Assembly: GCA_964106645.2 (NCBI GenBank) | Contig: OZ067038.1 | From: Podarcis pityusensis | Taxonomy: Eukaryota | Direction: 5' to 3' (one strand) | DNA length: 64,000 nt | Made by a program: the position numbers and the translations under genes | Notes under the pieces: model-generated | Told to the model about the DNA's origin: nothing | Databases searched by the model: none | Seen by the model: the letters and a program-made list of their open reading frames with translations, nothing else | In this document: piece after piece, positions 30,423-53,594 of the stretch | Layout: each line of letters opens with the position of its first letter | Numbering within the stretch: the stretch's first letter is position 1

Positions 30423-30684
30423 GTACAAGAAGGGCCAGAAAGTGACTGGAGATGAGCACTTAAAAATCTCACACAAGGACACAAAGTATGCTTTGTTCAT
30501 TGAGAAGGTGTGTGACACAGACGCTGGCCTCTATGTGGTCCGGGCTAAAAATTCTAGTGGCACGGTTTCCTCAAGTGCCATTCTCCATGTGCAAGGTAAC
30601 AAGCCACCTATAAAAAGAATAGACTGGATAATCATCTGTGCCCTCTACTTGGTTGTTTCACTTGCGTACTGGCTGTTCACTTAG
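30423..30684 (+). CDS. CCDC141: CCDC141 terminal coding exon: second half of the Ig domain plus C-terminal hydrophobic tail
   Basis: TTCAG|G acceptor completes the Trp codon; reads YKKGQK...[14 protein letters not shown]...[34 protein letters not shown]. Confidence 0.93.
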
Positions 30685-30946
30685 CACAGCAGCACACCAG
30701 CACCACGGGACTTTAACTTTCACACTTGGAGACGACAGCAAATGGCCGCCTTTCGCTGCACCTCACATCACTTTCACCCCCTTTGGTTATGAGTCACTCT
30801 GAATATAGTTCTTCTGATATTAATATCACAGCTACACTGGTTGTCGTTATTCATTCATTACTATATCAATGTTACTTGGGGGTGGGAAAGAGATTTGTAA
30901 AGACACCTAGTAGGTTTTTGTGTGTGCTTTAGAACTAAACACAAGC

Positions 30947-30952
30947 AATAAA
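30947..30952 (+). terminator. Candidate CCDC141 polyadenylation signal
   Basis: First AATAAA after the stop at 30684. Confidence 0.5.
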
Positions 30953-33900
30953 AAAGAAATGTATTATTTATGGGTTACGATTGGATTGCTGGCATCCACT
31001 TCAATTTATCTCCTTTTTTTTAAAAAAAAAAATAATCATACTGTGAATGCTTTAATGAAAATGCACCAAGGTTTCATGCACTTAGAATATTTGTAGCATA
31101 ATTCAAAGGGCTTTACTCCCATTGTCTCAATCTGTGCAACAGCTCTGCAAGGTAGGATGGTATTGTTGTATTGTTATCCCCATGTTGCAAGCGGTGCTGG
31201 GTGAGCCTGGAAGAATAGTGGTTTGCTTAAGGCCCACGTAGAAGCTTTTGAAAAGGGGATTTTCCGACTTGCAGCTCAGACACTTAAGACAATGCACAAT
31301 GCTAGGTTTTGCCAATTTCAGATTGCGTGTCAACTTGTCAAAGCGAGAAGATATGAAAATAGTTGATGCATTTATCATTTTAATTCACTCTTGAATGTTT
31401 TCAAATAGAACAAGAAATTCAGAACGATGTTTAAAAGGAGGAGAAATGTTTGTGGGTGACGTGTAGTTTAAAACATGATAAAATATAAAGCAAATAAAAT
31501 GTTAATGAGTACGCCCTTGCTAAAGTAATAAGGAAGGAGTAATACTTTTTAAAGCAAGCTAAGAGTCTTAGAAGGAATTTGCTTGGGAATTGCATTTCTT
31601 TTATTTTTAAATGTGGGAGCCAGAGCAACATTGTATTATTAGAATTTCTTGCCTTGAAGGATGTAATATCTTTGATTCATAGAATAATATATTGCCAGTT
31701 TTGACAAAGGTAAGGGGGGAAAAGATGCTATTTAAAGGGAGAGTTCACCTGTACATTTTCACCAAATTCAAATGACAAGTTGATCATCGTTAATTCCTTC
31801 CGTTTCCTAGGAAGAGGAGACATACATATATGGTATCTATGTGGTTTAAAAAATGGTTGATAAATATTAGTGTAACTTTTTTTCTTGGAGAATAACTTTC
31901 TTCTTTCTTATAATGACTGCTTTGAGGGAAATTAATTTTTTTTAAAGAAATCCAATCTCTTAAAAGAAAATTACAATATGAAAATAAATCTTCAAGTGCA
32001 CAGTGTGCTGTGGAAAGAATATCTGTTACAAATGGCAGGGAGGGAGGGGGTATGAAGATGGAGGGAAGAGGAGTTTTAGCCAACTGGCTGCAGATTTATT
32101 AGAGACATGTAAAACTGAAAGGAGATCAGTCTTCTAGGCAGCCCTGTCCTTGAGGCAAAGAAAGCAGGGGAGGGAGGCCAGTTGATCCAAGACAACAACT
32201 TATCATCGTTCTATGAAAAGAATATATTGGGCAGATGATGTGCTACACTTGTGGGCACAGGCGCAGTAAGGCTGCCTCCAAGAAGCCAAGGCAGCAGGGA
32301 TGCATAAGCAGAATTACCACAGTACAACGTTCTTGGATTAAAACACGCCACAACTTTTATTGATTACAGATGTAAGTAGGTTTTGGCTTAGGCCCTGGGT
32401 ATCCTGAATCATCCAGTCTCCTGATTGGGGGTTGGTTCCTGAGATAGGGTTGCCCTAAAGCATGCATCAAATAGAAGCAACTCCTCGCGACCACCAATTT
32501 GTTGAATGTTGTGGCCCTCAGCCCCTGTCTGGGTCTACAAACAGAAGCACCTCCCCCAGGATTCCTTTAATGGGATACCCCATTTCCTTGGAGAGGGAAG
32601 GCAGAGACTTTTATAACCCTCTCCTCCGCTGTTGACTCAGGATCCTATCCAATGCCTTAGTCAACAAAAGTTGTGATGATTGCTATGAGGTAGGCAGGCC
32701 CAATCTGTTTGGAGGAGAAATTCCTCCCTGGCCCTGAATTCAGCGGTTGAAACATCCGTAGCAAGGTCATACAGCAAACCATGCTAACAAGGGTGGGAGA
32801 TAAAACTCTTGACTGGCAACAGAATTTGGAGGCGGACCTGAATATATCTTGGGGGAAGGGACCTGATTGAAGACTCCTGATGGAGTCCCAGTCAGTTCCA
32901 CCCTCTGAAGCTCTGTCTCCGGACTCACCCACAATTGGTTGATTGGTGGGTGGGGAAATTCAAATTTCCAACGGCCAGGAGGAGGCCATAACTGCCACTT
33001 CACATTTCAAGGTCAATGGATCTTCCTTTACATCCACCCTTATACATGAATCACACTGCAACAAAATTCTCCTTGTAGCTCCTTTCGGAATACTGCACAG
33101 GTGGTAACAAAGTAGGGGAAAAGTTGTGTTCCAAAAATCGCTGGCAATAGTTTCACATGCTGTCTCAGATAACACAGCTGTTTCACACATGCGTTGACGA
33201 TAGCTGCATCAGCAGTCGAAGACGAGCGCATGTGAGTGAACCATCACAGTTCTAACACAACACATGTATTTCATATCATGCCTCTCCTGAAATGCAATCC
33301 TTTTCAGTGGAGTCAGTTCACACATCTGGTGCAAGCAATGTGCATTCATATGTGAACTGGCTCTAAGTGCAAAGAGCAAAAAGTTCTCACTCCTTCAGTT
33401 ATTTCTTGGCTATGTGAAGAGAGAGGAGGTGGTGTTTCATAGAAGCGGGATTGGAGTTTACTTGTGGCAATGTTACTCTCCCTTCCTTTGTCTAGCAGTC
33501 AGATCTGCCCCTACATAAAATGTGCTTCCATCCATCTTTCTGCCAATGCTGTTGCAGGCCTGCATATGGCTATGCAGATCTATTATTAGATGCTTCATTG
33601 ATTGGAGACTCCTTTCCTGGTACATAACAGAAACTCTTTCCCCTACAAAGTAATGGGGATGAACATCCTTCTGTGGGGAGCTCCTTTTCCTTAAGGCTAT
33701 TTGCATAGTGTGTCTAAATTATTTTGAGAAAGTTTGTGAAGTTAAAGAGTCAATATTTGTACTCAAGCTTTTATAAACAGAGTGTTGGAGTTGGAGTCCA
33801 CCCGTTTCTCTCTCCTTTCCACCAGCAAGAGTTCAGAGGTCTTTCGCAGCTGCCAGACAGGTGCTGCTTTCGCTTTGTACGTTCATGGCTTGGCTAGGAA

Positions 33901-34960
33901 AGCGACACCTGTTTAACTTTTGCCTGTCGCACAGCAGTTACATGGCACAAAATGTCTTAAAGTTAAATGCTGTCTGGAAGGGTAGTGTGACAACTCAACT
34001 CTGCTTTCATTCATAATTGTGACTTAAGCTCTTTCTAAAATGCATGAACAAATGGCCACAAACAAATTGCGAAAGAAACCAGCCCCAAACCATAACACTG
34101 GATCTCTATGCTGGGAAAAGCTTTACCGGTTGAAATTATTGGCAACCCAAGGGAACGTCCAGTAAAATAAAAAATAAAATATGTACTATTCCGTTTAGAT
34201 CTCATCTTTCCTCCAAGGAGCTCAAGCTGGCAAACATGGTTGTCTCCCTCCCAGTTTTATCCTCACAACATCCTGCGAGGTAGGTTAGGTTGAGAGACTG
34301 TGGTTGGCCCAATGTCATCCAGTGAGCTTCAGTTATAAGCAGGGATTTGAACCTGGTCTCTCGGATCCAAGCCCAACATTCTGACTACACCACACAACCA
34401 TAGGAGCCAACTCCAAGAGGCTGAGGGGTCCTAGCCCCCCATAAAATATTTAAGGGGGCCAGTGGGGGCAAAGTTGATGGGCATTGCCAGTCAAATGGTG
34501 TGCAGGCACCGTGTCATGTGATTGATCATGTATGGTGGAGCTGACCTGCCCCCCCCCCCCATATTTTATTCACATTGGCACCCCTGACACCACCTCCCTT
34601 CAAGCCTAGTGAACAGGGCCTAAACAACCGGCCCTAACAGCACAAAAAGGACTCCTATTAATCTGAGCAGGTTAAATAGGACTAATGAGATTTTGACAGT
34701 ATGACACTTAAATACCCACGGCATTGAAAATGCAAAATATTCCATTTGGAAACCCCAAACCACACCCACCTGACCCACCCCTAATATAATGACAGGTAGG
34801 CTAAGACATGGCCTTTACTCTGAAGTGTGTTTCCAAGTGGTTTCAATTGAAGTCATTCAGAAACACGCTTCAGAGGCCTGGTGACTGAGGAGTGAGTGCA
34901 CCTGTTTTGCTCAAGAGGCCTGGGAGTCTTAGAAATAAGAACCCGGACTGAGGCTGTGCT

Positions 34961-35526
34961 TGTTAGACACAGAGGTTAATTTTAGAGTCCTTGTTTGTGC
35001 CCACAGTTACTACAGACTGGTTTTCTCCCTTCCAGGATACTGTTGCATGCCACCCCAAGCGGTGAGAGATTCCAGGGGTTCCAGGCTCTGTGCTTCCTTT
35101 CGGAAATGAGGCACAGCAGAGACTGTGGAGACTTTAGGATACATGGTTTAATTACACATATATGCAACCCGAGACTACAGTGGAGGGGTTCACAGGATTA
35201 ACACAGCAAGAGGGTCTTGCTTCTCCCATAGTCACAGCTTTGGATTCTAAACAATCACCAGATATTCTGCTCTGACCCTCTCTCTAGCTTTGCGACTTTA
35301 ACAGCCTGCCACCTTTCCCCCTTAGATCATGTCACAGCTAATTCAACTCTTAAAAGGAGAGTTTAAAGTAAAGAGCTGAGGGAGACCCCTCCCATTTGCC
35401 ATCGGGCACCAAGCTCCCTCTATTTGGCTGTCCTAATGGCTCATCACTTGTATTTTGTCCTCCTAATGGCCTATTACCCCAGGCTATTTTTTGGTCAGAA
35501 AACTGCCCTGGGCTTATATTTTAACA
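34961..35526. mobile_element. Possible solo LTR
   Basis: TGTTAG...TTAACA inverted termini around about 570 bp; flanks only partly similar (TGTGCT/TATGCC). Confidence 0.3.
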
Positions 35527-37516
35527 TATGCCCTGATTAAATTCGAACCCTTACTGTACCCAGGAAATTAGGGGAGTCTGGTACCCAAAAACTCATAACA
35601 ATACTCTGTAGGCCCTGAGGTGGACTAGTCAAGGCTTACTTAGCCCAGAACATTCTGGAATCCTGGTCTAGATCAAGGAATGGATCTGCCATAGACAGTA
35701 CTCAGCTGTCAAGCTTGGCCTGCAGAGTTCGTGGAGACAAGGACTTATCCCTTCAGGCTGAAAAGTTCCCCCACCCTTGGTCTAAGACATTAACCCAACT
35801 GGGGCTGCCTACATGCTTTCTCTCAAAGAATTCTGGGCACTGTAGCTTACTCCTCACAAAGTTACAATTCCCAGCAACCCTTAAGGAACTACAGGGCCCA
35901 GAAGTCTTTGAGGGAGGGAAATATGCTTTGAATGTGCTTCAGAGGTATGGTGGGTGCGCATTCTAGGTTTCTGCTGTGGGAAAATGCTTTGGGCAACAGT
36001 GGTGTTTTGTGGGGTACAAGACCCCCAAGCTTAATCCCTTGCATTTCCAGGTTGGACTGGGAAAGATCCTCACCTGAAACTCTGGAGAGCCATTGCTAGT
36101 CAAAGTAAACAATCCAGATCCTCCAAGTGTCCCTATTTTCCAGGGACAGCCCTGGATTCACAGAAGCCATTCCAGTTTCAGATTTGATCCCAGAATCTCC
36201 CATTTTTTCCTTAGGACGTCCCTGTTTTCATCAGAAAAATGTTGGAAGGTATGGAATAGGATGTCCCAATTTTCATTAGATAAATGTGAGAGGTTATGCA
36301 GTAGTGAGAGATAGGTGGACCTGGTGGTTTGGCATGAGACAAATTCTTGTTTTTCCTATGAAATCCTCCAGGGATGCTTCACTTTACCGGGCTTCTTTAA
36401 AATCCCTCCTCAGCTCAGAAAGAAGATGGTGCCTATTCCTTCCCTGCAGGACAGAATTAGCCGTCAGGATTTCCTGGTATGAAGCAATATAAATAACCAG
36501 GAACCTGGCCAGGAGTATAAGAAGCAGAGCTGTGATAGGTGCAAAGGCGAGTCGGTATATGTTTCCTGGTATCCCAGGAAATGTTCCAATTCAATAAAAT
36601 AAAGGGCACATTTTGATGATGTAGAGGCACGGCCTAACAGATACTCTGAAGATAAAGGAGTTGTGGTGGAAAATAAAAGCAATTAACAAGCAGGCAGGAT
36701 ACAACATATTCTCTTTTTTTCATGCTCATGGGCATCTCTTCCTAATGAACCCATGGACTATGACAGTCATGTACAGGCTTGCCAATCAAATGTGGTAAAA
36801 CTGTGTTCTATCAGGCTTGTTTATTTCTTTTAGATCTTTTTACCTCACTCAGCAGGAATCCCAGAGCAGGCGACATTAAAACCCTTATACTGTAATCAAC
36901 AAAAACTAAAACAAGCAACAAAGCAATAAAGCCAAGCAAATAATCACAAAAATTAATAGCAGTACAAACAAAACCTTCACGAGGTTTTCTGTCATAAAAT
37001 ATCTATAGTGTTTGGATGCCCTGGATAAATAGAATTTTCATCTGGCATGGAATAGCAAACAAGGATGGTGCCAGGCAAACGTTTTTGGGGAAGGAGCTCC
37101 ATAAAAAGAGTTCTGTACAACTGAAAGGGGTTTATTGGTAGCTGAGAAAGTCAGTGAACTCTAATTTGCTTGAGTTCTCTCCCGGCACATAATAATCTGC
37201 CTTGGCTCTTTCTGTCACATCTCTACAGAAGGTGTGGTGAACCTGTGGCCCTCCAAACGTTACTGAACTCCAACTCCCATAAGTCCCTTCTAGCACGGTC
37301 AATGGTTGGGGATGAGGGGAAATGTAGTCCAGCGAAATTTGGACAATAGCCACAGGCTCACCATCCTTGCCCTACAATCCACCCAGTTCTTCCTAGGGAT
37401 CACCTGCCTGATTTCTGTCTCTGCAGCCAGCAATTTTAAAAAAGTTTTTATTTTTTGTGATACAAAAACAAACAAGGAAAAATACCTATAGCGTCTCCAC
37501 TTTCAATTCATATGGC

Positions 37517-38325
37517 CAGGGCCGGATTTAGGTTTGATGAGGCCCAAAGCTACTGAAGGTAATGGGGCCCTTTATACAGTGGTACCTCACAAGACAAATG
37601 CCTCGCAAGACAGAAAACTCGCAAAACGAAAGGGTTTTTGGTTTTTTGAGTTGCTTTGCAAGACGATTTTCCCTATGGGCTTGCTTCGCAAGACGGAAAC
37701 GTCTTGCAAGTTTGTTTCCTTTTTCTTAACACCGTTAATACAGTTGCGACTTGACTTCGAGAAGCAACTCATAGAACGCAGTGTGGTAGCCTTTTTTGAG
37801 GTTTTTGAAGACTTTGGTGATTTTTGAAGCTTTTCCAAAACTTTTCCGACACCGTGCTTCGCAAGACGAAAGAAACCGCAAGACGAAAAAACTCGCGGAA
37901 CGAATTAATTTCATCTTGCGAGGCACCACTGTATGTCCAGCTGTCCTTTGTCAACAACAAATTGTTGCAGTTTTTGTGTGTTGAATATATGCTATATTGT
38001 AATTTATGGACCTAATAGTTATCTAAAGTCATTTGCACATGTTGCCATGCAACCAGTCCATGCAGAATGTAGGCACCCTGTATATAGAAATGAGCAAACC
38101 AGTGATATTTTAGGGAGCAGGCTAGCAGGCGGGGCCCATTACTTACATCATAGGAGTCTACACAACACAAAACACTGTTGCTGCATGTAGGTTTTATTTG
38201 TTTTTTATCTTCTATTTTGGAAATGTGCATCCATTTTTTTTCTTTAATTTTTTTTTTTGGGGGGGGGCCAAAACAGTGGGGCACTAAGCTATAGCTTGTT
38301 TAGCTTATACGTAAATCTGGCGCTG
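37517..38325. mobile_element. hAT-type non-autonomous element with a nested Tc1/mariner MITE (37577-37931)
   Basis: Outer TIR CAGGGCCGGATTTA / TAAATCTGGCGCTG with flanks CATATGGC/CATGTAGC. Inner element TA|CAGTGGTACCTC...GAGGCACCACTG|TA with repeated GCAAGACG. Confidence 0.75.
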
Positions 38326-39059
38326 CATGTAGCTAATCTGACACAACACACACACACACCACAACCCCATGCACACGTACAAACAAACCATACTGCAACC
38401 AACCAAGCTATGGACTCTCCACTCTCTCACAATGCCAATAAAAACAAATAACTATATAAATAAAGGGCCTACCCACGAGACACTGACGCAAAAACCCTGT
38501 ACAAACACTATGCAATAGAATAAGAGTGGCCAGCAATTTTTAAAGCGAAAGCCAAGAGCTGTGTTCTTGCAGCCTGGGCAGAGATGTCACTGTAATACAT
38601 GTTTGAAATATACTTATTATAAGGCTTGATTCAGGGCAATGAGGCTGGTAAGTTTTTAAAAAGTCCCTGTAATTCCCTGCTCAACCAGGGAGTGCAGTTA
38701 TATAGCTATTCAGTTACATAGTTACACACTACCAAGCAAAAATAATATCCCAGCCGAGCCTCTGTAACCAGCAAAATCTATTTTATTAAAATGGATGTGT
38801 TACCAAGCTTCGGGGAGGGGAGTAGAAAAACCATAGCTTCTGTGTTTTTCTGAAATAATATTCCAAATTATGAAGCTGTCTCGACTTCCTAACATGGCTC
38901 TAAACATGTTGCACTGTTTATTAGCCAGGAGAACCTTTTGTGTGCTACTGCTTCGTCCAGGGTAAATGATATTTTTAAATTTTACACCTTAAACAGGCTA
39001 TCTAGATGAAAATACGGTCCAGTAAATCTTTGGAAACTTGAAGTTAGGTGGTATTAGAG

Positions 39060-39748
39060 AAGCCAGATTCAGATGCTATTCTAGGCTGCATAAACAGAAG
39101 TATAGTGTCTTGATCAAGGGAAATCACAGTACCACTATTTTTTGCCTTGGTCAGACTACACCGGAGTGGATTGACACACCGGGGGTGGGGATGCTATAAA
39201 TAAGTCAGAAATTAAATTGTTATAACAACAACAACAAAACCGCTATGGAAAATCACATATCATTTTTTAATACTCCCCAGCGCCATCCGGTGTTGTATGT
39301 TTATAACACATTCAAAACACTATTTTTTTTTACTAATGTAGCTGAGTCTCTGGAAACATATGAGGAATAGTTGAGGGAATTGGGTGTGTTTAGCCTGGAA
39401 AAGAGGAGACTGAGAGGCGATATTATAGACATCTTCAAATATATAAAGAATTGTCACATGGAGGATGGAGCAAGCTTGTTTTCTCTTGCCCCGGAGGGTA
39501 GGACTCGAACCAGTGGCTTCAAGCTACAATAAACGAGATTCCAACTTAACATGAGGAAGAGCTTTCTGAAGGTAAGAGCTGTTCAACTCCCTTGGAAAGT
39601 GGTGGACTCTCCTTTCTTGGTTTCTAAGTAAAGATTGAATGGCCATCTGCCGTGGATGTTTTAGTTGAGATTCCTGCCTTGCAGGGTGCTAGATTAGAAT
39701 GATGACCATCGGGGTCCCTTTCCAACTCTACATCTCTATGATTTTATG
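39060..39748 (+). mobile_element. Degenerate CR1 LINE 3' fragment, interrupted at about 39165-39340
   Basis: Similar to the CR1 at 61318 ([20 protein letters not shown]); ends in a CTATGATTTTATGA tail. Short CR1 tails also occur at about 3425-3475 (-), 50283-50363 and 53100-53227. Confidence 0.8.
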
Positions 39749-40660
39749 AACTTGTGGGTGCAGAGCTTTATGGGAAGTAAGCTTCCGTGTTAAGCACTGC
39801 CAAAGGGGGGACGTAAGAGGGGCTCCTTTGAACCCTATGCTGATTTCTTCTTGTGGCATAGCTTTGGCAGCATTAAGGTGGTCCCTGGTTCATCTGAGCC
39901 ACAGGGGACCACTAACATTGAGTCCCTCAAAGACCAAATCAAGTTAAGAAATTAAATAAGCTATGGCAATTTCAATTAAAAAAAATGAAAGCAGACTCCT
40001 TTCTTCCTTGCCCTCCTGGAATGCTTATCACATTATGCTTTCTGGCACACGATGATTATTCTGTATAACGTCCATGTGTGTAAACAAGTGCAAAGACATT
40101 TTGGGGAATGCAAATTGCTACTTTAAAAGCTTCCAGGGACTGGTGTGTGGCCAATGGGATTTTGTGACTTAGCCTCCCACTTTGAACGGCTGATCATCGT
40201 GGCATATCACAAACTACTTTCGAAATTCTCTTCGTTTTAAAAGCTCTTAGGCATGTAGTATAGAGCATGGCTGACTGAAAACTCTCAAGTGCAACCGAAC
40301 TAGGAATCTGGTTCCTTGGATCCTATCCACTGCCTGAATTTGTATTATCAACAAGTGCAAGTTGGCAGATTTGTGCAGTTTGAAACTACTTCAGCATACT
40401 AGACCCCATAGTGAGCAGCCACCTGTTTTGCAGTCAGTCTTACTGGATTACTGCCAACAAGTCAGAGTTGCTCTTTCTTTGGACAACTTTGAAATCTAGA
40501 TACGTGCTAAAGTGGCATGAGCGAATAACGGATAACTATTTCCCAGCTGTACCCCCACCCAACTAGGAAGTACAGAGTCCTCATAATATGATTTTCTAAA
40601 CACTATTTATCAGCCTCTTAATCAACAAAATCCTCAAAGTGGTGAACATCAAACCATATA

Positions 40661-40813
40661 CAGTGGAACCTCGGTTCTCGAATGTCTCCATTGACGAACA
40701 TTTCCGAACCCGAACGCCGAAAACCCGGAAGTAAATGCTTCTGTTTTCAAACGCGCCTTGGAAGTCAAACAGTCTTCCGGAATGTATTATGTTTGAAAAC
40801 CAAGGTTCAACTG
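40661..40813. mobile_element. Tc1/mariner/Tigger-like MITE
   Basis: TA|CAGTGGAACCTCGGTT...AACCAAGGTTCAACTG|TA. Confidence 0.75.
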
Positions 40814-40943
40814 TACAGTAAAACATGCCAATAAAATAAAACTTTTAAAACACATTGACATGAGAATGTGTCAGTATGTAAGTGATATCCGGATATATAG
40901 CATCATATTGTAAAATTACTTGTCCGGATAGGATTGCTTAAAC

Positions 40944-41297
40944 TGTATACCTGAAGGAGCGTCTTCACCCCCATCATTCAGCCCGGACACTGAGGTCCAG
41001 CTCCGAGGGCCTTCTGGTGTCTCCCTCACTGCGAGAAGTGAGGTTACAGGGAATCAGGCAGAGGGCCTTCTCAGCAGTGGTGCCCGCCCTGTGGAAAGCC
41101 CTCCCATCAGATGTCAAGAGGATAAAGAACTACACAACTTTTAGAAGACACTTGAAGGCAACCCTGTATCAGGAAATTTTTTAAATATTTGATGTTATAT
41201 TATGCTTTTATATGTGTTTGAACCTGCTCAGAGTGGCTTGGGCAACCCAGCCAAACGGGTGGGGTATAAATAATAAATAATTTATTATTATTATTAT
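40944..41297 (+). mobile_element. L2-clade LINE 3' fragment (copies at 59028-59437 on - and 63000-63416 on +)
   Basis: RAFSxxAPxLWxxLPSDVK-type coding remnant and AT-rich simple-repeat tail; the three copies are mutually similar. Confidence 0.8.
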
Positions 41298-42184
41298 AGC
41301 AGCACACTGAAAACAATACAGCAAATATTCTGCCTAATAATGTCCACCTAATAATAATATGTCATTCAAACAATAATTTTACATGCCACGTACAAACATA
41401 GTGGCATAGGACCCAATTAGCCCCCACAGTAAAATATTTTGAGGAGGCTGGGCCCCCGCAAAGGTGATGGGCATTGCCATTCAAATGGTGTGTGTGCACC
41501 ATGTCATGTGATCAATTATGCGAGGTGGGGCTTCCCTGGGCCCCCACAATGTTTTATTCAAGTTGGCACCCCTGCATAGGGGTGATTGACAGCCGTCATT
41601 CTATGTTGCGCAACACATGAAGCTTTCCTCTTTCAACCCTACATTCTGTTTCTGCCAGTCTGCTTCAAGCTACTAGCAAAGCTTTGACGCTGATCTCTTT
41701 TGAGGCCTCTGCCCCCTTGCACTCAGCCGTTTGTCATCCCAAATGATCCAAATGATACAGAAGGAATACATAGCTTAGGTAACTAAAGGATACAGATTTT
41801 TTTTTTTATCGTGCCATAAATCATCAAGCAGAGGGCATTTTATTTCTCCATAGCCTCACTGCCTGTAGACACAGCACTGCAGGAAGGCAGCAAAAAGGGG
41901 GCTGAATTTTCCTGGTGTGTCTTCTAAACATGTTAAGAGATCAAATGCAGGAGTTGGTTAGCAGGGGAATAGCACAGAAGGGATTTCTCTCCTCCCTGCC
42001 TGCCCCCACTTCATTCATTTTTCATTTTTCTTGCACGTCCCCAAGCACATGGCAGATCACAGTTGCTATACCAAGTGTGCTGCTGGTTATTAACATCCCT
42101 CCTACCCACCACACAAATATGCTTACTTACCTCCAACAATTTACATCCTGTACACAGTATGAAAACTTTCTCTCATGCCCACTA

Positions 42185-42409
42185 CAGTGGTACCTTGGGT
42201 TACAAACACCTCAGGTTACAAACACTTTGGGTTACAGACTCCATTAACCCAGAAGTAGTACCTCAGGTTAAGAACTTTACCTCAGGATGAGAACAGAAAT
42301 GGCGCCACGGTGGCGTAGTGGCAGCAAAAGGCCCCATTAGCTAAAGTGGTACCTCAGGTTAAGAATGGACCTCCGGAACGAATTAAGTTCGCAACCAGAG
42401 GTACTACTG
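42185..42409. mobile_element. Tc1/mariner-type MITE (third copy)
   Basis: TA|CAGTGGTACCTTGGGTTA...AGAGGTACTACTG|TA. Confidence 0.85.
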
Positions 42410-42554
42410 TATATCGCAATACCCAAAGGGAGCTAATTCAACCATTAAGGAATCTTTGCTGTGGGAAGTCATTTACTGGTACTTCAATCTCAGCAGCAGC
42501 ATTTTGCCTTTTTTAAAAAAGCAATATACCCCTTCTCTTCTTTTCTTTTCCTAG

Positions 42555-42709
42555 TACAAGGAGTGCAGCCAAGCTTCATTAAAAAATTTAGACATGCTAC
42601 TCTTCAAGAAGGAGATGATTTAAACCTGCACTGTACAATATCTGGAAGACCAAGGCCAAATGTCATTTGGACAAAAGATGGCATCAGGGTGGCAGCCAGA
42701 GGAACGAGT
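42555..42709 (+). CDS. Intergenic exon A: N-terminal half of an extra Ig I-set domain (VQGVQPSFIKKFRHATLQEGDDLNLHCTISGRPRPNVIWTKDGIRVAARGTS)
   Basis: Strong pyrimidine tract plus CTAG|TA acceptor, AGT|GTATGT donor, 155 nt, phase 1/0; I-set hallmarks P-x-F, C, G-x-P-x-P and W-x-K-D-G. Confidence 0.85.
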
Positions 42710-42808
42710 GTATGTCACAGTGTTTTGTAAATGCTCCTTTGGGAAGAACACCACATGTCTGGCTTCACACAGCTAATCTCCCTCTATCTGTATTTCATTG
42801 TTTTGCAG

Positions 42809-42938
42809 ATTGAGAAATTAGGGGACACCTATTACCTTTTAAAAAGAAACGCGGTCCTTGCTGACTCTGGGAAATATCTCTGCATTGCCACTAATGAAGT
42901 CGGGGAGGCCTCTTGCTCAGCTTTCGTAAGAGTAATAG
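42809..42938 (+). CDS. Intergenic exon B: C-terminal half of the extra Ig domain (IEKLGDTYYLLKRNAVLADSGKYLCIATNEVGEASCSAFVRVI)
   Basis: TTTTGCAG|ATT acceptor, ATAG|GTAACT donor, 130 nt, phase 0/1; D-S-G-x-Y-x-C-x-A-x-N-x-x-G motif. Confidence 0.85.
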
Positions 42939-43027
42939 GTAACTTGGCACACATTATTGGGTCACGTTAGTATAATAAATGAAGACCTTGCTCCCAACTC
43001 TGGCTTGACATCCCCATTTTGTTTCAG

Positions 43028-43184
43028 AGCAGAATAAAAATGTTCCTAGTGCAACTGAGACTAAATCAAAGCAGGAGAGCTGCTATTCATCAGGAAAAGT
43101 GAAGGCTGATGCACCTGAAGCATTGCAAGGTCAGGATTCGCGTTGCTTGAGAGGTCAAAGGCAAACTAAAAACTGTTCCGTGAG
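43028..43184 (+). CDS. Intergenic exon C: polar linker (EQNKNVPSATETKSKQESCYSSGKVKADAPEALQGQDSRCLRGQRQTKNCSV-R)
   Basis: TTTTGTTTCAG|AG acceptor, GAG|GTAACT donor, 157 nt, open in the frame set by exon B, phase 1/2. Confidence 0.65.
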
Positions 43185-44272
43185 GTAACTTCAATTTATG
43201 TTTTCTTACCTTGTCAAGTCCTGCGGCAGCTGTTTCAGCATTTCATTTACAGAGATTTCATACCGCTCTCTCCTTTTAGCACTGTACTATTTTGAACAAT
43301 CAAAGGAAATGCCACACAAAAAGGAGCCAAAGGGGTGTGTGCAGTGTCTTGCGTGCTGTGCGCACCCCAGTTGTCCCAAACTATTCCACGCACACTAACA
43401 CGTCCCCTTGAAAAGCTACACCTAAAGGCAGAGGGTCCCTTTTAAGTACTGGAGCAAAGTACTGTAGGTGAAAAGGGAAACCAGCTGTTCCCTCATGGGC
43501 TTGCACATAAGTGCCTCAGCCCAACAATTATTTCCTAACAAAATTTTTGAATGTGTGTGTGCACGCTAAGGTTATCTCAGAAATCAAGATGGGCAACGGG
43601 ATACATATAGCCTTTGACCCCCTCTGGCAGCAGGGAGAAACACTGAGAATTGTGTTGGTGTCATTTAATGAATCGGGTTTCTGGTCAATAAGAACATGTG
43701 GGTTTTCAAGCATTGTTTCAGATTTTGCCTCTGACCAACTCAAAACTTTTCACTAAGGCAGCCAGCTAACTTAGCATTTGTGAAAATCTAGTCATGTGAT
43801 TCTCCCACCAGCAGTTTGAAATGGTTTACCACGTACTTTCACAGCACTTTGGAGATGTGGCTATTTGGTGATTATTAACATTCATGAAGCACCAATAATA
43901 CTAGCCGATAAAGTTTGGCGTGGTTTTTTCTTTGTATGGCGCATGGCTGGAATGCCCCACATAGAGGAAGTGATAATCAGCACTTAGTGTCTAAAAATAG
44001 TGGTGTCGGGGCTTAAACCTGCCTGCGAACTATGCCATGTGTCCTGAAAAACCTCCTCTTTAATCCAAGAATGTGGAGACAGACTGAAGTTGCCCAGTGG
44101 TGGCACTTTTAAATATGACTTCATGCATTCCAGAACCACAGCCCTGTTGTTCAGAGAGTGGCTGAACTCTAGTGAGCCTGGAAACAACTTAAGCCCTGGT
44201 GGTAATGGTTGGTTGTGATCTCCAGCTATCCTGGTTGCACTAGAAAACTGGACTTCCTTCTTTTGACTACAG

Positions 44273-44354
44273 AAAAACCATACAGCTGTCCTTTAATCAC
44301 CACCCCAAAGTTCCATCAAGACTGCAAGCAGAAGAGTTGGAAGATGTAGCCTGA
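44273..44354 (+). CDS. Candidate alternative terminal exon D (R-KTIQLSFNHHPKVPSRLQAEELEDVA*)
   Basis: CTTCCTTCTTTTGACTACAG acceptor; continues the phase-2 frame from exon C for 26 codons to TGA. No homology support. Confidence 0.35.
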
Positions 44355-45880
44355 GTCATTCAAGCAACAAACATTAATGGAGAAATACAGTACAAGATGT
44401 TAGTTTCAGAATCACGAGGATATTCAGAAATGGCCTCCTCAGCAAGCTCTACATAATGTTTCCCAAAATGGTTTTAGAATTATCACACAGCAGGTGGCAC
44501 AGATTGCGTGGTCATCTCTTGTGTTCAGTATACCCAGAAGTTTTATTTTATGTGATCGTAAAGACTTTTGATCATCATCAGCTCCTGTGAACCTTTATTT
44601 GGGCCCAGTGAGGGCATATTCAATTTTTTTAAATTTATTACTTTCTCTATCCAAAAGGTTCAGGTTGGAGTTGCACTACGTGATCATATTATTGTCTACA
44701 GTAAGTCCACAACTTATGCAGTGATTAAGTTCCAGGGATCGAACTCAAAGCCCAAATTGTGTTTGGTCAAAACCAATTGGGTTCAATGGCTGGCAGGATT
44801 GGCAAAGTCATTCCCGCCCCCCCGACCCGAACCATGCTCCCCTTTTTAAATTTTTTGTCATATGCGTAAAGCTGAATGCACACAAGTTAAATGTGTTTAA
44901 AGCTGCAGGCTTACTGTGTTCATCCATCAACTTTAAAGACAGTTTCATAGCAGAGAGGAAATTGGGTTGGCCCAATTGCATCCACCCAGGTAGTTTTCCT
45001 GGGACAGCAGTGTTTTCAGACCACCAGTGAAACCGTCTGCACTCCAAAGGTACACAAGCAGTATCCCTTCCAACAGGGGTGGGGATCCTCAGGCCTTGGG
45101 GACAAATGTTTATTTTATTAACTAAATTTCTATGTCACCCTTCATCCATAGATCTCAGAGCAGTTCACAGCATAAAAATACAAGACAAATGTGGCCCTCC
45201 AGGTCCTTGGAACACCCCCCCCCCAGTCTTGCTCCACATCCTCCTCGAGTGTTTTTGCCTAGCTGGAATATGTCCTTGAACTCTGATCTTGCCTCTTAGT
45301 TACCTGGGCGGAGGATAGAGAGGGATGTGTGAGGGTGTGTAGAAACTAGTCTGGTGTATAAAGATAAATTTTATTTCTCCACCCAATTTTCATAGGAAAA
45401 CGTCAAATGGGGAAAAAAAGTGCTTTACTTTTGTTCTGAGTGGACAGTTAGCATTGCAGCCAGACTTGGAAGCTATACCAAAATGAAAGCTGGCTATTAT
45501 TCCAAACACACCAGATTGGCACATCAGAGCAATTAACTCAAAGCATCTCTCTGACAACGGAGTCCCTATCCTGCTCTTTATATCGAGCTTTTTAAAAGAA
45601 ATGTCAATGATGCTCAGGATGAAACACACGTGAGTGACACACATACAAAATGGCACCTCTATAATGAGTTCTCCCCCCTTTACTTTATAACGTGCCGGAG
45701 CACTCATCATTATGTTGGGAGTTTCCTCACCCCTGTTACTGGCTGCCAGGGTGGTGAAATTCACAACACAATAGTATCAGATCCTTGCTTGAATGTGGCT
45801 GTATATCACTGGGATGATTTTGTCATGCGGGTGTACGCAATTTGAAGCTTCACAATTTGAAGGCTGTTACCCTTATCACA

Positions 45881-46244
45881 GGGACGCGGGTGGCGCTGTG
45901 GGTTAAACCACAGAGCTTAGGATTTGCCAATCAGAAGGTTGGCGGTTCAAATCCCTGCGACGGGGTGAGCTCCCATTGCTCGGTCCCTGCTCCTGCCAAC
46001 CTAGCAGTTTAAAAGCACGCCAAAGTGCAAGTAGATAAATAGGGACTGCTCCGGCGGGAAGGTAAACGGCATTTCTGTGTGCTGCTCTGGTTTGCCAGAA
46101 GCGGCTTAGTCATGCTGGCCACATGACCCGGAAGCTGTCTGCGGACAAACGCCGGCTCCCTCGGCCTATAGAGCGAGATGAGCATGCAACCCCAGAGTCG
46201 GTCACGACTGGACCTAATGGTCAGGGGTTCCTTTACCTTTACCT
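45881..46244 (+). mobile_element. Full-length Sauria SINE with 14-bp TSD
   Basis: GGGACGCGGGTGGCGCTGTGGGTTAAACC head, B-box-like GGTTCAAATCC and (ACCTTT)n tail; flanks TTACCCTTATCACA (45867-45880) and TTACCCTTCTCACA (46245-46258). Confidence 0.92.
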
Positions 46245-48587
46245 TTACCCTTCTCACATGGTAATATATGATAAGACCATGTTTGTTATATATTATATAG
46301 AGAGATGATTTTAAAGAAAATAATTCAGTGTAAAAGTAAACAAGTACGAAACAAGTTACAAAATATAAAGCAAGGACAAAGGTGGTTACAAATAATTCAT
46401 ATACTGTTGCATAATCAGTTTGAAGGAGTCGAGCAGGCAGGTGGCAATATTCTAGCATCTTCCATGCAGCTTCCAGGCTGCCATGTTGCTCTCTTCCGAC
46501 CCAAAAGTTATTACTGAAACCACAAATGAGAATAAGGGGAAGGCAGGGGATGACCATGCTGACTAACTTCAGTTAACTCAAAAAGCTGCAAACTTATTCT
46601 GTATACTTCCCCCCCCCCCAGCAATTTTCACTTTTGTGTGCGTTTCTCCAATAAGAAAATGTGCCACAATATATGATCCCATGTCTTCAGTTTTAAGGAG
46701 GTTAGAGATATTGGAAATTGCCACTCAAAAGAGCACATCAACTGAGCTCTCTGATTTTTAGGTGTGAGATGGGATGTATTGGAGAGGCCCTGCACCTTTG
46801 GGTTTGTTTATGACTTCTTCTGTCTTAGCCCAGAGTAAAGAGCTTTGCTCATCTGTCACAAAAGTTGTGGACTATGTTCTTGTTTGCTTCCTTTAGCTTA
46901 TCACACATTTCCTCCTCACAGCAAAAGCACAGAAGTGAAATCTGTCTACATAACCCATTATGATTATATTATATCCAACCGCATAGCAAGAACTAAAACT
47001 TAACAAATGTAACTTGTCCATAAGAAATAAATATTTTGCTTGAAAATGTTATAGAAAAGTTCATTTATTTTTTCTCCTCTTACATTTTGTGAACACATCA
47101 GAATGTGACTATGTGCATATAAACAACACTTGGGAAGACACATCCCTCTCCTTATCTTTCAAAAGTATTGATTTGTTGAAAAAGCAGCAAACAAAAATGA
47201 AACTTCAGTTTCTAGACGTAATGCATATTCATTCAGACAACACCCACAATTCATGGTTTGACAATAAATCATATGTTACACTGTAGCCATTCTGTAATAA
47301 ACCATGTGGTTAATGATGACTGTTCATTAGAGATGAAAGTAATTTATTTGTAAATCACTGGGAATGCAAAAAAAATAAAACAACCCGCTTACTAGACTAC
47401 AGGTTTTTAAATTCCATCTTTCTCACACACATATATTTTGCTATTTCCTCTGTGTGGAGATTTAAAACCAAGTAGAGAAGAATGTCTGAAAAGGGCTATA
47501 GTTATAGGGAATAAAGCTGACCCTTAGAAGAGCTTTTGAATTACTTGTGCCTTGTCATTGTGGTTGGTATCAGTCCTTCATATACTCTGGTGCTCTAGTC
47601 AGCGACTAATTTTAGTAGCTGCCATGTTTTAAATTGGGCCTGGGCTGAAGGCCTAGCAAGATTGGCTTCAGCTGCCTACGGCTGACACAAGCCGACACAC
47701 AACCACACGGGAGGCTTAAACTTTGTCTCCTTAGTAGAAACAACCACAGAAGTTCTGACACAGTTTTGATGCTCTGGTTTTTGTTTTTTGCTTGACTAGC
47801 CAAGGGAATAGCCGTTGTACATAACTAGGGTCTAGGGGAAAGTCTGTAGAATTTGGGGAAAAGACAAAAAGTCCCCTGTGGCCTGAACTGAACCCTTATT
47901 GTAATGCTACTGCTGCCTTGGGGAAAAGTAAGATCCTACGCGGACACCGTAGAGTTGAGGCGATAGCCATAGATCAAACCAGCCCTGGTTGTCAAAAAAG
48001 GCGAGAGTACAGGTAATTTTAATCCTAAATATATAACTATATAGGGCACTATTCTACATTTTTGCAAAAGTGTAAGGACTAACACCACAAGGGAAACACA
48101 CAAGTGAACACTGTCCCCCAATATGATACGGAGGCTTGCGTGGAAATCTGAGAACAGATTTATGGGGTGTGGGTGGGGTAAGAAGAAGGGGAGATGATTC
48201 AGTTGCACAAGGAGAAATCCTTGCACTAATGCTTTGTTGTAGTCTCGTTGCTAAGCAACAACGTGCCGAGCTCACCAGAGTGGGAGGCCAGCCAATCAGA
48301 AGAGTCTCTGAGGTGTACTTACTTCAGATATTGAAGTCAGATCCAGTGCTAGATCCAGTGACAACTGGGCATGGCAATAGTTGAGAAGCCATTTTGAGAC
48401 ACATGGCGAAAATAAAACGCTTCTCTCGTTTTCCCAGTCTTAAGTTCAGTTTTCCACATTTCCGTATCAGTTTGTATTTTTAAAATTCTTTGGTATTTTT
48501 GTGTGAATTTCTACTAAGATACATATTTATACTGCAAACTACACTGTGACCCTTGCATGATGAGCAGTATATAAATTTAATAAATAG

Positions 48588-48636
<49 letters not shown>

Positions 48637-49920
48637 AAAGCAGTTTTCCTTAAGTTTTGTATGTTATGGTCACTAAGCAACTTTATGCACACTTTAGCTG
48701 AGTATATGCATTTTGGTTTACATTACAAAAGAACACCACTGCAAAATTTGGAAAAGTGCAAATTTCAAAAAGGTATCTGTGTTCTGGTTCATCTATTGTT
48801 CCGAAAAGTGGGTGCGTTTAAATGTGAACTGAGTGGAATTTCTCTAGATGAAAAAGCTGGCTATACATTTCATAAATAAATGAATTAATATTTCCTCTAA
48901 AAATGGTTCAGTCTTTAAGAAGACATTCAAGAGGGAGCTTGCTAAAAATTGTTACTTTCCAGATTTTAACTACTACCCTAATAACATGGCTGTTTCCCCT
49001 GGTAATATGGATTAACACTTCGGCAATAATTTAGTGTTTTGTCCACATAATGAAACTTTAATCATGATGCTAAGTTTCCAGCTTTGCATCCAGAACATCA
49101 TAAACTTCCTAGACAAGTTGTGTTCACCATCCATCTTGGAGAGCTGGGCTGTGTCCAACCTTTGTCACAGTTCATCGTGAAACCTTGAGTAAACCACTAT
49201 TTTCAGCCTCAGTTCCCCATCCAACAAATGGGAGTAAAGGTGACCTATCTCTCATAATCATGATGGAGACAACCCCACTTTTCAAATTAAAATGTCCCTT
49301 AAGTGGTATTCAACTAAATTTTACTCAGAGTATACCCACTGAAATTAATGAACACCAATGAGCAGATTTTGGTGGGCCAAAGCAGGGTCAGCCCACCAAT
49401 GAGGCCAAGTGAAGTGACTGCCTCAGATGGCAAGATCCACAGGTGCAGCAGATCCCGATGTCAATCTTTCTTCCCCTAATGTTCCTGATGTAGATCTTCA
49501 CTCACCCCTTCTTCCCTTGCAGGGAGGGGAGCACCATTTTGGGGTTCGCCTCAGGTGCCAAAATGTCTTGGGCCGGCCCTTATCCAGAAGGTTCCATGGG
49601 GAAGGCAAGATTGGTACCAAAACCAACCTCCTCTCCCCCATGGAAGCCTCATTGCATCCAAGGCCCTTCCATGAACAGAAGGGCACCACGGTTGCAGTCA
49701 ACGTCTTATCTCTGCTTTCATTTTCTGCGAAGTGGGGAGGTGGACTGCAAAACACCACCCCTCTTGAACATTTCTGCTGTTTGCAGCACAGTTTTTATTC
49801 CTCTTTGCTAAATCCAACCTCTGATCTCTGATCAAGGATTATTTCCAATTTATATGAAATAAACAAATGCTTTTGTTTGCATCGGAACATGCTTCGTTTA
49901 AGTCATCCTAGAAGCAATGT

Positions 49921-50263
49921 GGGACGCAGGTTGTGCTGTGGTCTAAACCACTGAGCCTCTTGGGCTTGCCGATCAAAAAGTTGGCAGTTCGAATCTTCAC
50001 AACGGGGTGAGCTCCCGTTGCTCTGACCCAGCTCCTGCCAACCTAGCAGTTCGAAAGCAGACCAGAGCAAGTAGATAAATAGGTACCGCTCCAGCGGGAA
50101 GGTAAGTGGTGTTTCCGTGTGCTGGTGACATGACCCAGAAAGCTGTCTGTGGACAAACGCCAGCTCCCTTGGCCTGAAAGCGAGATGAGCGCCGCACCCC
50201 ATAGTTGCCTTTGACTGAACTTAACTGTCCAGGGGTCCTTTACCTTTTTTTTTTTTTTTTTTT
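49921..50263 (+). mobile_element. Sauria SINE with internal deletion, T-homopolymer tail and 11-bp TSD
   Basis: Same head and body as the 45881 copy; TAGAAGCAATG at 49909-49919 and 50264-50274. Confidence 0.9.
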
Positions 50264-50859
50264 TAGAAGCAATGCCTTAACTTCCTGAGATTCCTGCATT
50301 GCAGGGGGTTGGACTGGATGACCCTTGGGGTCCCTTCCAACTCTTCAATTATATGATTCTATGAACTTTCTTCAGAAGTGCTAATCACTCTGACATGTAA
50401 AGGCTTTATTAAGTCAAAATAATATATTCTTCCAGTATAATAAGTCCACCTGGTATGCAACCAGCTTACTTATTTGACCTGGAGATAGACAGTTGAATTT
50501 GCCCTTTTTTTGTTCGCAAGGAGGCAAATGGATGGTTTGGCTGGACTGGGACTAGAAGAGCCCATTACTTAGTTGACTCTTTATCACAATTAGCTAATAA
50601 CATCTCTATTAACACACCCACCCACATGACCCCATTTCTTTACTCTCCCACTTTTTTAAAAAAAAGATACCTAAGGCATGAACTCCTTAGTAGCATCGGA
50701 TACAATCCCAGTTCCCCACACAACTATACTTTGTGGAAAAAAACCTGGTTGCTTGTTCCTCAGTATGGCCTCTCTTTCTAGTGCCAAAATTAGCATTGTC
50801 AATCAGGCAAACAGGTGGCCCATTGCATTAAGCGGACATACACCCCTTTTTGCTGGGGA

Positions 50860-50948
50860 AGCCAATCAGAAGTGGCGCCGAGGTGACAGAGGCAGACTTG
50901 TCAGCAGATCTGGGGTATAAAAAGCTAAACAACCATGTTAGCACTTCT
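50860..50948 (+). promoter_or_regulatory. TTN: TTN core promoter (CCAAT box 50862-50866, TATA box 50916-50923)
   Basis: GCCAATCAG and TATAAAAA; the TATA box starts 33 bp upstream of the recognised start of exon 1. Confidence 0.85.
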
Positions 50949-51163
50949 GAGCAGTCGTGCATTCCCAGCCTCGCCTCGGGTGTAGGGATTGCAGGGAAAA
51001 GCAAAACTACACCGTCTCAACCGTGTAGTTTTGTTTTTTTCGGCTAGAGGCTCAACCATTCTCATGTTGGGATTGTTTAAAATCATACTCTGGATAAGGA
51101 CGTCGTTTAAGGAACTTACGTTTGGGCGTAGCCCACCCAATTTAGGCACTCTTGTGCAATCAG
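50949..51163 (+). other. TTN: TTN exon 1 (non-coding 5' UTR)
   Basis: Begins GAGCAGTCGTGCATTCCCAGCCTCGCCTCGGGTGTAGGGATTGCA, matching the recalled 5' end of human TTN mRNA; ends at CAG|GTGAGT. Confidence 0.9.
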
Positions 51164-51407
51164 GTGAGTGGCATGCCTGGGTTGACTGAGCTGTGTTTTC
51201 TATGTCAAGTAAAGCCCTGGTACAAAATGCATGTACCTAGGAGTGTCTAGTAGCTTGAATTAAGGGGGTGGGGTGGGGGAAAAGCATGAAGTCCTACATG
51301 ATTCTTTTAAACCAGAATGCAGAAGTAGAGATCTCTTGGCAAATGAATTTTTAGGTCTTTGTAATAGTTGGCTAATATGTCTTTAAATGTGCTTGAGTGT
51401 GAAAAGC

Positions 51408-51448
<41 letters not shown>

Positions 51449-52793
51449 TATTAAAATGTCTGGTTAACTTTTAATGCTTCCAGGGAGTGCTCAAGGTTAT
51501 ATTACTTGCAGATAAACGGAGATGCTCCCAGAATAGCTCTGATAAAATGCACATGGCATCGGCTAGTCGCTGATGACTTTTTAAGGGAATCAGCTGCTGG
51601 GGTATCCGTTACACTGCAGATCTGGACCACTTGCCTGCTGTCAGTCAAACCTGGGGTGGTTATTTTTGGAATGTGACATTTCACAGGCATACTTTCGAAA
51701 TACTAATGATACAAAAGTCATATAAGATTACCGTTTGGATAAACAGCAATTTCCCCCGCTACATTAAGGTAGAGAAGAAAACAAATTGGGGACTGAAACA
51801 TCTATGCTATGGAATTAAGTCACCTTAAGTAGTCTTTGCTTTCTTTCCTTTTAGCTCAGTTCTTTCTGCTTCAGATAATGTGAGGAACCCAACTTGGAAA
51901 ATGACGTAAAGTCATCTAAATATTCTCAATTTAAAACTAAGCGTTGCAACGAATTCATGTAAAGGAATTCACTTGTTAGAAATCTGGAAGTTTTAACTAT
52001 TTAAGAAGAAAGGGGGCCATATGCAGAAAAAGGCAGCATGTTCATATTGCTATTATGAAGCTTTCTATTATTATCTCAGTGGAATTCTGCTGTCTGAACT
52101 TACAGGCATAGGAGTTTTTAAGATAGCTCAGAGAAATAGGCCTCCCATATGCCACTAGTAAAATCTCTGGTACCTCAGTTTGTAGTTTTGTGGGAATTCA
52201 TTAAAGATATCGGAATACTGATCCTGCCTCTTTTATGATAAATCCAGCAGGCAAGTAAATACAGAGGGATATTATAGGTCCTGCATACTGAGTTGAATTA
52301 TTACATGGCTGTATGCTTTTTTTATGTGGTTTGCCAGAAAATGAGGACATTGTGTTTTACCAACAAATGTTTTAGGGGTGGGGTGGGGTCAGATTTTGCA
52401 CCTTCCTGCAGTTGTTCAAACCATCAGTGTCAGTTATCTTATAGCCTAGCTCACATTTCACAGGGCTCCTCACTCTCTAACCTAGATTCAACTGTGCTGC
52501 CTGTATGTTTTACAAGTACATTTTTATTCTGCTTCCCCCCACCTCTCCCCACAGAGTTCATCTTTTGTATGAAAGGAAACTATCAAGCATTCTAAGGAGG
52601 TTCTTTTTAAACACTTCTAAATTTCCACATAGACTGAAGATTTCCAGTACACTTTAATGGTCACTCATTTAAAGGCACGTGGAATGGGGAAATGATACTA
52701 GCACTTTAGGGCAGTCTTGTGATTTTGAATAAAATCATTTCCTCCCACCCTCCACCCCTCCATTTTCACTTCTGGTTTGAGAAGGGCTTAAGG

Positions 52794-52998
52794 CAGAGCT
52801 TTCCAAATGGTGAATCGCAACACGTTTGTGTGTCGGCTGCAGCGTGTAGGTGTGTCGCGTAACGCTCCCTGAGCTCATTCCGGAGCTGGAAAGGGCTTAG
52901 TTTAACCTCCGGTTTGCTAGTAAAGCCGGATTACTGTGTTGCGAAATGATGCATGTCTGAAAAGGGTGTCACTGACATGAAAAGTTAGGGAAGCTCTG
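52794..52998. mobile_element. hAT (Charlie-like) MITE in TTN intron 1 with a perfect 8-bp TSD
   Basis: GCTTAAGG|CAGAGCTTTCC...GGAAGCTCTG|GCTTAAGG. Confidence 0.85.
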
Positions 52999-53503
52999 GC
53001 TTAAGGAGTGCAGCAAATGTCAGATAATAAAGCAATAGCAGCATGAGATAGGAGGCTCTTAAGCGGCGTGCTTATTTCCATTTGGCAATATGGACTGTCC
53101 TTCCTTGCAGGTTTTTAAGCAGAGGTTGGATGGCTGTCTGTCATGGATGCTTTAGCTGAGATTCCTGCATTGCAGGGGGTTGGACTAGATGACCCCCCAG
53201 CATCCCTTGCAGCTCCATGATTCTATGTGCAGCTCCCTTTAAGCCGTTTGCAACCAGGTCACTCACTGTGCTAATCAGAGCTGTAGATAGTCGGGATAAC
53301 TACAATGCATCAACCTCCATAAAATGCTGCTATTAGGGTGTGACTCAGTCAAGAATGTCATCAGTGGAAATCACTCCATAGGGAAGTGTAGGGCAAAGAG
53401 TTTCATGTCACCTGGTCATGCTCTCTATGCTCAGGACTTCAGAAGGATCGACATCTCACATACGCTTTTTATTTCCGTCTTTCTTTTCAGAGTGCCTTTA
53501 AAG

Positions 53504-53594
53504 ATGTCAACCAAAGCGCCGACGTTCACGCAGCCGTTACAAAGCGTTGTGGCACTGGAGGGTAGTGCCGCAACCTTTGAGGCTCACATTAGTG
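53504..53594 (+). CDS. TTN: TTN exon 2 coding part (exon 53491-53594; MSTKAPTFTQPLQSVVALEGSAATFEAHISG), start of Ig Z1
   Basis: Titin N-terminus; TTTTCAG acceptor, 13-nt UTR, 91 coding nt, G|GTAAGG donor. Confidence 0.97.

Follow-up and report, generated by a model that had tools for sequence, protein, structure and literature searches.

An ancestral SESTD1–CCDC141–TTN gene, connectitin, has been published, along with zormin and sallimus of Drosophila (PMC12198301). In mammals, the C-terminus of CCDC141 binds A-band regions of titin (PMC12657953), and the same paper cites a transcript spanning both genes (the FLJ39502-TTN joint transcript of Labeit et al. 2006). Our own literature search for CCDC141–TTN read-through found no paper. 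An earlier note on the lizard locus, made from the sequence alone, had inferred an ancestral titin–CCDC141 link, which the connectitin work already describes; the note had itself cautioned that such a link may already be reported in other vertebrates. Here, we analyze the interval between the two genes in a 64,000-nucleotide stretch of Podarcis pityusensis DNA (the window).

Results

Exons at the 3′ end of CCDC141

The splice path and its surroundings comprise the following features.

30423..30595, + strand: CCDC141 exon, second half of Ig domain 1 (Pfam I-set 35-90), ending at an internal phase-1 donor
30596..30684, + strand: read-through tail of the same CCDC141 exon, membrane-anchor form, stop TAG at 30682-30684
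42555..42709, + strand: exon A, first half of Ig domain 2 (phase 1/0)
42809..42938, + strand: exon B, second half of Ig domain 2 (phase 0/1)
43028..43184, + strand: exon C, linker (phase 1/2), with a second donor at 43129/43130
44273..44354, + strand: exon D, coding part, 26 codons, TGA at 44352-44354
44355..47515, + strand: long 3′ UTR of exon D, contig coverage to 45800, probable end near the AATAAA cluster at 47026-47515
50913..51163, + strand: TTN TATA box and noncoding exon 1, donor ATCAG/GTGAGT at 51163, putative start site
53491..53594, + strand: TTN exon 2, with a 13-nt open leader, ATG at 53504, and the start of Z1

Sequence checks upheld the internal donor (CAAG/GTAACA at 30595/30596), the AG/GT ends of exons A, B, and C, and a stop-free path through them into TTN exon 2, as originally described from the letters. 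These three exons are far beyond chance. Together, exons A and B make up one I-set Ig domain, each encoding half of it (Pfam PF07679; profile positions 1-42, E 1e-9, and 52-90, E 9e-8); this is the extra Ig domain that the earlier note had proposed. Reading across the main donor of exon C leads to an immediate stop (AGG TAA). The read-through tail at 30596..30684 has a 19-residue hydropathy of 2.1, and gecko has an exon 83% identical to it.

Exon D, which was absent from the earlier note, begins at the acceptor TACAG/AAAAAC at 44273. When it is entered from the 43129 donor, translation ends at a TAG at 44347-44349. Contig depth over 44238-45800 is 52-145 in run X1 and 42-231 in run X6, values that are partly inflated by repeats. 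Five AATAAA signals lie 3′ of exon D (the first at 47026, then 47263, 47296, 47374, and 47510), ∼3.4 to 3.9 kb upstream of the titin promoter. Beyond the last Ig exon, the interval up to TTN thus holds a terminal exon with a stop, a long UTR, and several poly(A) signals.

RNA contigs join exon C to exon D

The joints 30595^42555, 42709^42809, and 42938^43028, for which the earlier note had suggested a search, are present in RNA contigs, and the X1 loose end that precedes 42553 corresponds to where the CCDC141 exon ends, at 30595. The contig runs are marked "RNA?" by the record; their spliced joints argue for RNA. In all three runs with coverage (X1, X5, and X6), the main partner of exon C is exon D rather than TTN exon 2. 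The joint 43184^44273 reaches a depth of 66.1 in X1, 48.7 in X6, and 3.4 in X5, where a single contig passes unbroken from exon C into exon D. The second donor of exon C is joined to the same acceptor (43129^44273) at a depth of 30.6 in X1, and a form that retains the C–D intron, and stops at once, has depths of 16 and 9.9. In X6, a depth of 53.1 enters exon C, and 48.7 (to exon D) plus 9.9 (retained intron) leaves it. No exit from exon C toward titin is among the joints listed, and the known exits fill the incoming depth, in contigs that lose rare forms, in a listing that leaves out 110 loose ends, and in a mapping of 3,371 letters, too short to hold exon C and TTN exon 2 together. No reads of the raw-read run X19 fell on these exons. 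Exon C had been read as a bridge to titin; its joining to a terminal exon, found in three studies under two species labels, is, for the samples covered, the outcome that the earlier note had itself set against that reading.

Titin start and frame match

The TTN exon 1 motif recurs in bird and tortoise and in two fishes, one of them sardine, and the exon contains stops in the titin frame. The product of TTN exon 2 is 97% identical to bird titin residues 1-30. By chance alone, exon C and TTN exon 2 would match in frame with a probability near 0.28. The frame is kept in lizard, bustard, and tortoise, all with the same AG/GTAACT donor and a 13-nt stop-free leader; in sardine it is probably kept, as a possible phase-2 donor (GA/GTAAGG) across the stop also gives an open frame. 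The earlier note had asked whether the frame holds in other species, and it does so in this set. Agreement of phase across species represents one event, the inheritance of two introns, and not four. The 13-nt leader is also kept in the fish L009, whose second Ig has decayed, so conservation of the leader does not need a fusion. We regard the frame match as a relic of the connectitin seam or as a one-in-three coincidence inherited by all compared species, with the two about equally probable.

Counterparts in birds, turtles, fish, and mammals

An exhaustive protein search with exon A was dominated by giant multi-Ig proteins and recovered no orthologue; orthologues were reached through the large upstream exon and then through bird proteins. 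A human protein cluster (P0171, P0228-P0241) was left out of the comparisons. Exon A is identical to its counterparts at 35/51 residues in tortoise, 31/51 in bustard, and 23/50 in sardine, and exon B at 33/41 in tortoise and 32/43 in bustard, and the second Ig (exons A and B) is orthologous to that of birds and turtles (61-80% identity). Exon C matches tortoise at 18/48 residues, a score that none of 300 shuffles equaled. For exon D, the lizard peptide and that of birds and turtles share a faint 4/9 match that 153 of 300 shuffles equaled; a profile of 51 exon D peptides had no match in the window, nor was there a DNA match. The orthology of exon D therefore rests on position and phase.

The second Ig is present in 104 proteins, nearly all of them bird or turtle CCDC141, with tails of 55-126 residues. 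None of the 104 continues from the second Ig and linker into a titin start, in a search limited to models of 950-3020 residues, a range that full-length fusions would exceed. Six turtle RNA contigs run from exon C into exon D, and titin is called as a separate gene ∼9 to 10 kb past the CCDC141 tail in bustard, tortoise, and emu. Exons A to C, described by the earlier note as intergenic, constitute the 3′ end already annotated for CCDC141 in sauropsids, and the same tail in ∼100 bird and turtle models and in turtle RNA contigs removes their lizard-specific status. In gray whale, a search of the 10 kb that follow exon 24, a flank that stops short of TTN, found no second Ig, and a candidate exon D remnant was not significant (E 0.6). 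In a hemichordate model, a single ORF encodes CCDC141-like spectrin repeats together with a chain of Ig domains (E 1e-76 over 1154 residues).

Discussion

Exons A to D very probably form an alternative 3′ end of CCDC141 itself, which ends upstream of the titin promoter. When the internal donor at 30595 is used, the membrane anchor is lost and the protein gains a second I-set Ig, a 52-residue linker, and a short tail stopping in exon D; the transcript would close with a ∼3 kb 3′ UTR, at a putative poly(A) site before the titin promoter. The predicted product is a soluble two-Ig CCDC141. Like mammalian CCDC141, whose C-terminus binds titin (PMC12657953), the two-Ig protein may bind titin in trans by means of its C-terminal Ig region, rather than as part of one polypeptide. 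On the relic reading, the frame match marks the seam where a terminal exon and an internal promoter divided the ancestral connectitin gene.

A minor share of transcripts might escape polyadenylation at exon D, splice 43184^53491, and be translated as an N-terminally extended titin with spectrin repeats, two Ig domains, and the linker ahead of Z1–Z2 and the rest of titin. The frame shared by lizard, bustard, and tortoise, which the possible sardine donor would also leave open, the single hemichordate ORF, and the spanning transcript cited in the mammalian paper (PMC12657953) are consistent with such a product, and contigs cannot show its absence. We nevertheless consider it unlikely: the listed joints include no exit from exon C to titin and the depth is taken up by the exits observed, the leader persists in fish L009 with its decayed second Ig, the phase agreement is one inherited event, and no protein model in the searched size range continues into titin. 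It is correspondingly doubtful that exon C's phase-2 donor and the 13-nt TTN leader are a preserved connectitin seam that non-mammalian vertebrates still use, in a minority of transcripts, to place CCDC141 spectrin repeats and two Ig domains ahead of Z1–Z2. Two UniRef models in which CCDC141 is linked to parts of titin, from cavefish (P0218, Ig 1 to Z2) and owl (P0173), were rejected as evidence for a fusion; both skip exons A to C, join similar phase-1 Ig exons, and look alignment-driven.

Alternatively, exons A to D might chiefly make up a small single-Ig transcript that is distinct from full-length CCDC141 and starts at an internal promoter lying between exons 24 and A. Six RNA contigs of a turtle link exon A with first exons that fall within the exon 24–A intron, and duck, tortoise, and sparrow records call A to D a separate small gene. 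In the lizard, however, the X1 sequence before exon A is the CCDC141 exon end at 30595, and no CpG-rich stretch occurs between 30700 and 42500, which makes this explanation improbable. That exons A to C exist to bridge CCDC141 to titin, with the fused transcript as the main product in this lizard, is very improbable despite the clean splice sites, open frame, and conserved phase, given that exon C goes mainly to exon D in all three covered runs, that exon D has a stop followed by poly(A) signals, and that in birds and turtles the orthologues close with a terminal exon of the same phase.

The result is a gene model, the lizard orthologue of a CCDC141 ending already in databases for birds and turtles. 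It adds a third C-terminus, with a second Ig and lacking the membrane anchor, that is absent from the detailed functional paper on mouse and human (PMC12657953). It also locates, with exact coordinates, where the ancestral CCDC141–titin gene probably split, a point at which read-through can be decided by counting one junction. If a fusion were translated, even at a low level, vertebrate titin would gain an N-terminal extension before the telethonin-binding Z1–Z2; this extension would carry nesprin-1-binding spectrin repeats and provide a direct covalent link that is presently thought to be made in trans.

The closest known systems are the two-Ig CCDC141 proteins of birds and turtles (bustard KAM6071380.1 and XP_010125346.1; chicken XP_004942755.1) and the sardine model XP_062389611.1. 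All share with the lizard the internal donor after Ig 1 and a second Ig over two exons followed by a linker exon. The bird and turtle genes also share a phase-2 donor (AG/GTAACT) with an immediate stop if read through and the terminal exon before the titin promoter, whereas the sardine model ends in exon C. After the junction codon, exon D encodes 26 residues in lizard and ∼41 to 42 residues in birds and turtles; the lizard also differs in its long 3′ UTR and in the second donor at 43129, which gives another tail. Isoforms 1 and 2 of mammalian CCDC141 (CAMDI) resemble the lizard gene in their spectrin repeats, Ig 1, exon 24 read-through membrane anchor, and location just upstream of TTN, and the lizard tail at 30596..30684 matches isoform 2, but a single Ig domain is described in mammals compared with two in lizard (PMC12657953). 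With connectitin, the locus shares gene order, spectrin-then-Ig architecture, and a possible read-through path. Unlike connectitin, the lizard genes are separated by a terminal exon, poly(A) signals, and a titin promoter, and no joining RNA was seen among the contig joints listed.

Exons A to C are genuine but lead to a fourth exon

The window, which contains no N, covers two genes on its + strand: CCDC141, of which the 3′ part is present, and titin (TTN), represented by its 5′ end. An earlier note had proposed that three exons bridge a donor in the last CCDC141 exon to TTN exon 2, creating a fusion. Donor, exons and acceptor were all confirmed by a sequence check, and the path from CCDC141 through A, B and C to TTN exon 2 is open in a single frame only.

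Features of the CCDC141–TTN interval
30595, +, CCDC141 internal donor (exon 24)
42555-42709, +, exon A, first half of a Pfam I-set domain (E 1e-9)
42809-42938, +, exon B, second half of the I-set domain (E 9e-8)
43028-43184, +, exon C, a linker with no match in the Pfam domain search
about 50913, +, titin TATA box
51163, +, end of non-coding TTN exon 1
53491, +, TTN exon 2 acceptor

Public runs that are probably RNA by label contained 22–39% of the words from 42400–43400, approximately the exon share of that stretch, and RNA contigs were placed on 42430–45800. Contigs from three studies skip the A–B and B–C introns, and in run X1 the letters preceding exon A are the CCDC141 exon end at 30595; junctions 30595^42555, 42709^42809 and 42938^43028 are therefore real. 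The final step of the proposal, 43184^53491, gave way to another: donor 43184 joins an acceptor 1.1 kb downstream, at 44273 (exon D), at contig depths, rough and from unspecified tissues, of 66.1 in X1, 48.7 in X6 and 3.4 in X5, where one contig crosses from C to D unbroken. Donor 43129 is also joined to 44273 in X1 (depth 30.6), and the C–D intron is kept at low depth (16 in X1, 9.9 in X6). Depth in X6 is 53.1 into exon C and 58.6 out through 43184^44273 plus the kept intron. Contigs lose rare forms; none of the loose ends listed for these runs falls at 43184 (110 more lie outside those listed). In the raw-read run X19 the exons are without any reads. A to C are genuine exons whose destination differs from the proposed titin.

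Exon D supplies 26 codons past the junction codon before a stop at 44352-44354. The donor at 43129/43130, inside exon C, is phase 1 and reads D in another frame, with a different C-terminus and a stop at 44347-44349; the kept-intron form stops immediately. RNA coverage is high up to the end of the examined stretch (45800). The first AATAAA past D is at 47026, with four more, the last at 47510, about 3.4–3.9 kb upstream of the titin TATA box, and the poly(A) site of the D-ending transcript would lie near these signals. In the interval from exon D to the titin promoter are two related SINE-like repeats, one at 45878-46250, within the predicted 3′ UTR, and one at 49900-50250.

At 30595, CCDC141 has either a membrane-anchor ending (hydropathy 2.1) or splicing to A-B-C-D, which would yield a soluble product carrying two Ig domains. 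The two-Ig transcript would be ended by polyadenylation in D, with titin beginning at its own promoter. Beyond the membrane-anchor stop, non-coding 31571-32227 (74% gecko identity over 675 nt; AATAAA at 31493 and 31983) is probably the anchored form's 3′ UTR. The large CCDC141 exon (26412-27329), read past its donor, has a short ending that is conserved: gecko, frog and fish carry versions resembling WWVAYNEKT. It corresponds to isoform 1 of mammals, which has half of an Ig domain.

The second Ig domain in other species

Exons were searched individually, and a cluster of human proteins was kept out of the comparison. Searching with the large upstream CCDC141 exon found bustard and sardine proteins with a second Ig. 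The tail of full-length bustard CCDC141 matched 177 proteins, nearly all of those listed being bird or turtle CCDC141. The motif of the second Ig occurs in 104 proteins, every one ending 55–126 residues afterwards and none containing a titin start, in a search covering lengths to about 3,000 residues. Annotation makes titin a gene of its own in bustard, sardine, tortoise and emu. Judged by sequence identity (A 35/51, B 33/41, C 18/48), lizard exons A, B and C are orthologous to their tortoise counterparts. Lizard exon D has no significant similarity to bird or tortoise D; the C^D junction is present in six turtle RNA contigs. In gray whale, a weak similarity to exon D of birds and turtles, 5 kb past exon 24 (L010:26573-26626), was not significant (E 0.6).

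One turtle has two alternative first exons within the exon 24–A intron (L003:14480-14620 and 15108-15352; contigs L004-L008 and L012), spliced to exon A in a short single-Ig transcript. One is GC- and CpG-rich, and the lizard window has no CpG-rich stretch matching it.

The frame match with TTN exon 2

The frame agreement behind the fusion proposal passes the cross-species check that the note asked for, since it extends to bustard and tortoise: both have the lizard's AG/GTAACT phase-2 donor and a stop-free, 13-nt TTN exon 2 leader, which puts C in the same frame as exon 2. In sardine, where no exon D is evident (L002), the CCDC141 last-exon stop (14361-14386) spans a possible phase-2 donor, GA/GTAAGG, also in frame, with TTN exon 1 only some 780 nt downstream. 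A carp-like fish (L009:13370-13670) has lost the second Ig, with exon A recognisable yet decayed and a short stop-containing exon after it; its titin leader is likewise 13 nt and open. The C–D intron fixes the donor phase, just as the exon 1–2 intron fixes the leader; because both introns are inherited, this agreement counts once, against a chance level near 0.28, and is weaker than it appears. The junction arginine reflects the AG in the donor consensus, and TTN exon 1 has an identical end. A minor in-frame read-through from CCDC141 to titin is unlikely. TTN exons 3 (58498) and 4 (60238) begin in phase 1, like donors 30595, 42938 and 43129, so several further in-frame skips into titin are possible on paper. 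Two UniRef models joining CCDC141 to titin pieces (P0218, P0173) are probably artefacts.

Relation to known CCDC141–titin links

The frame pattern still fits a relic of an ancestral CCDC141–titin junction; in a hemichordate model, a single ORF combines an Ig chain with spectrin repeats resembling those of CCDC141 (E 1e-76). The two-Ig CCDC141 ending is already in databases; a literature search not aimed specifically at this ending returned no publication on it. In mouse, the CCDC141 C-terminus binds the titin A-band and its spectrin repeats bind nesprin-1 (PMC12657953), making a connection in trans the most likely one between CCDC141 and titin. A mammalian transcript spanning CCDC141 and TTN is credited to Labeit et al. 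2006, as cited in PMC12198301 and PMC12657953, and an ancestral SESTD1-CCDC141-TTN gene has already been published under the name 'connectitin' (PMC12198301).
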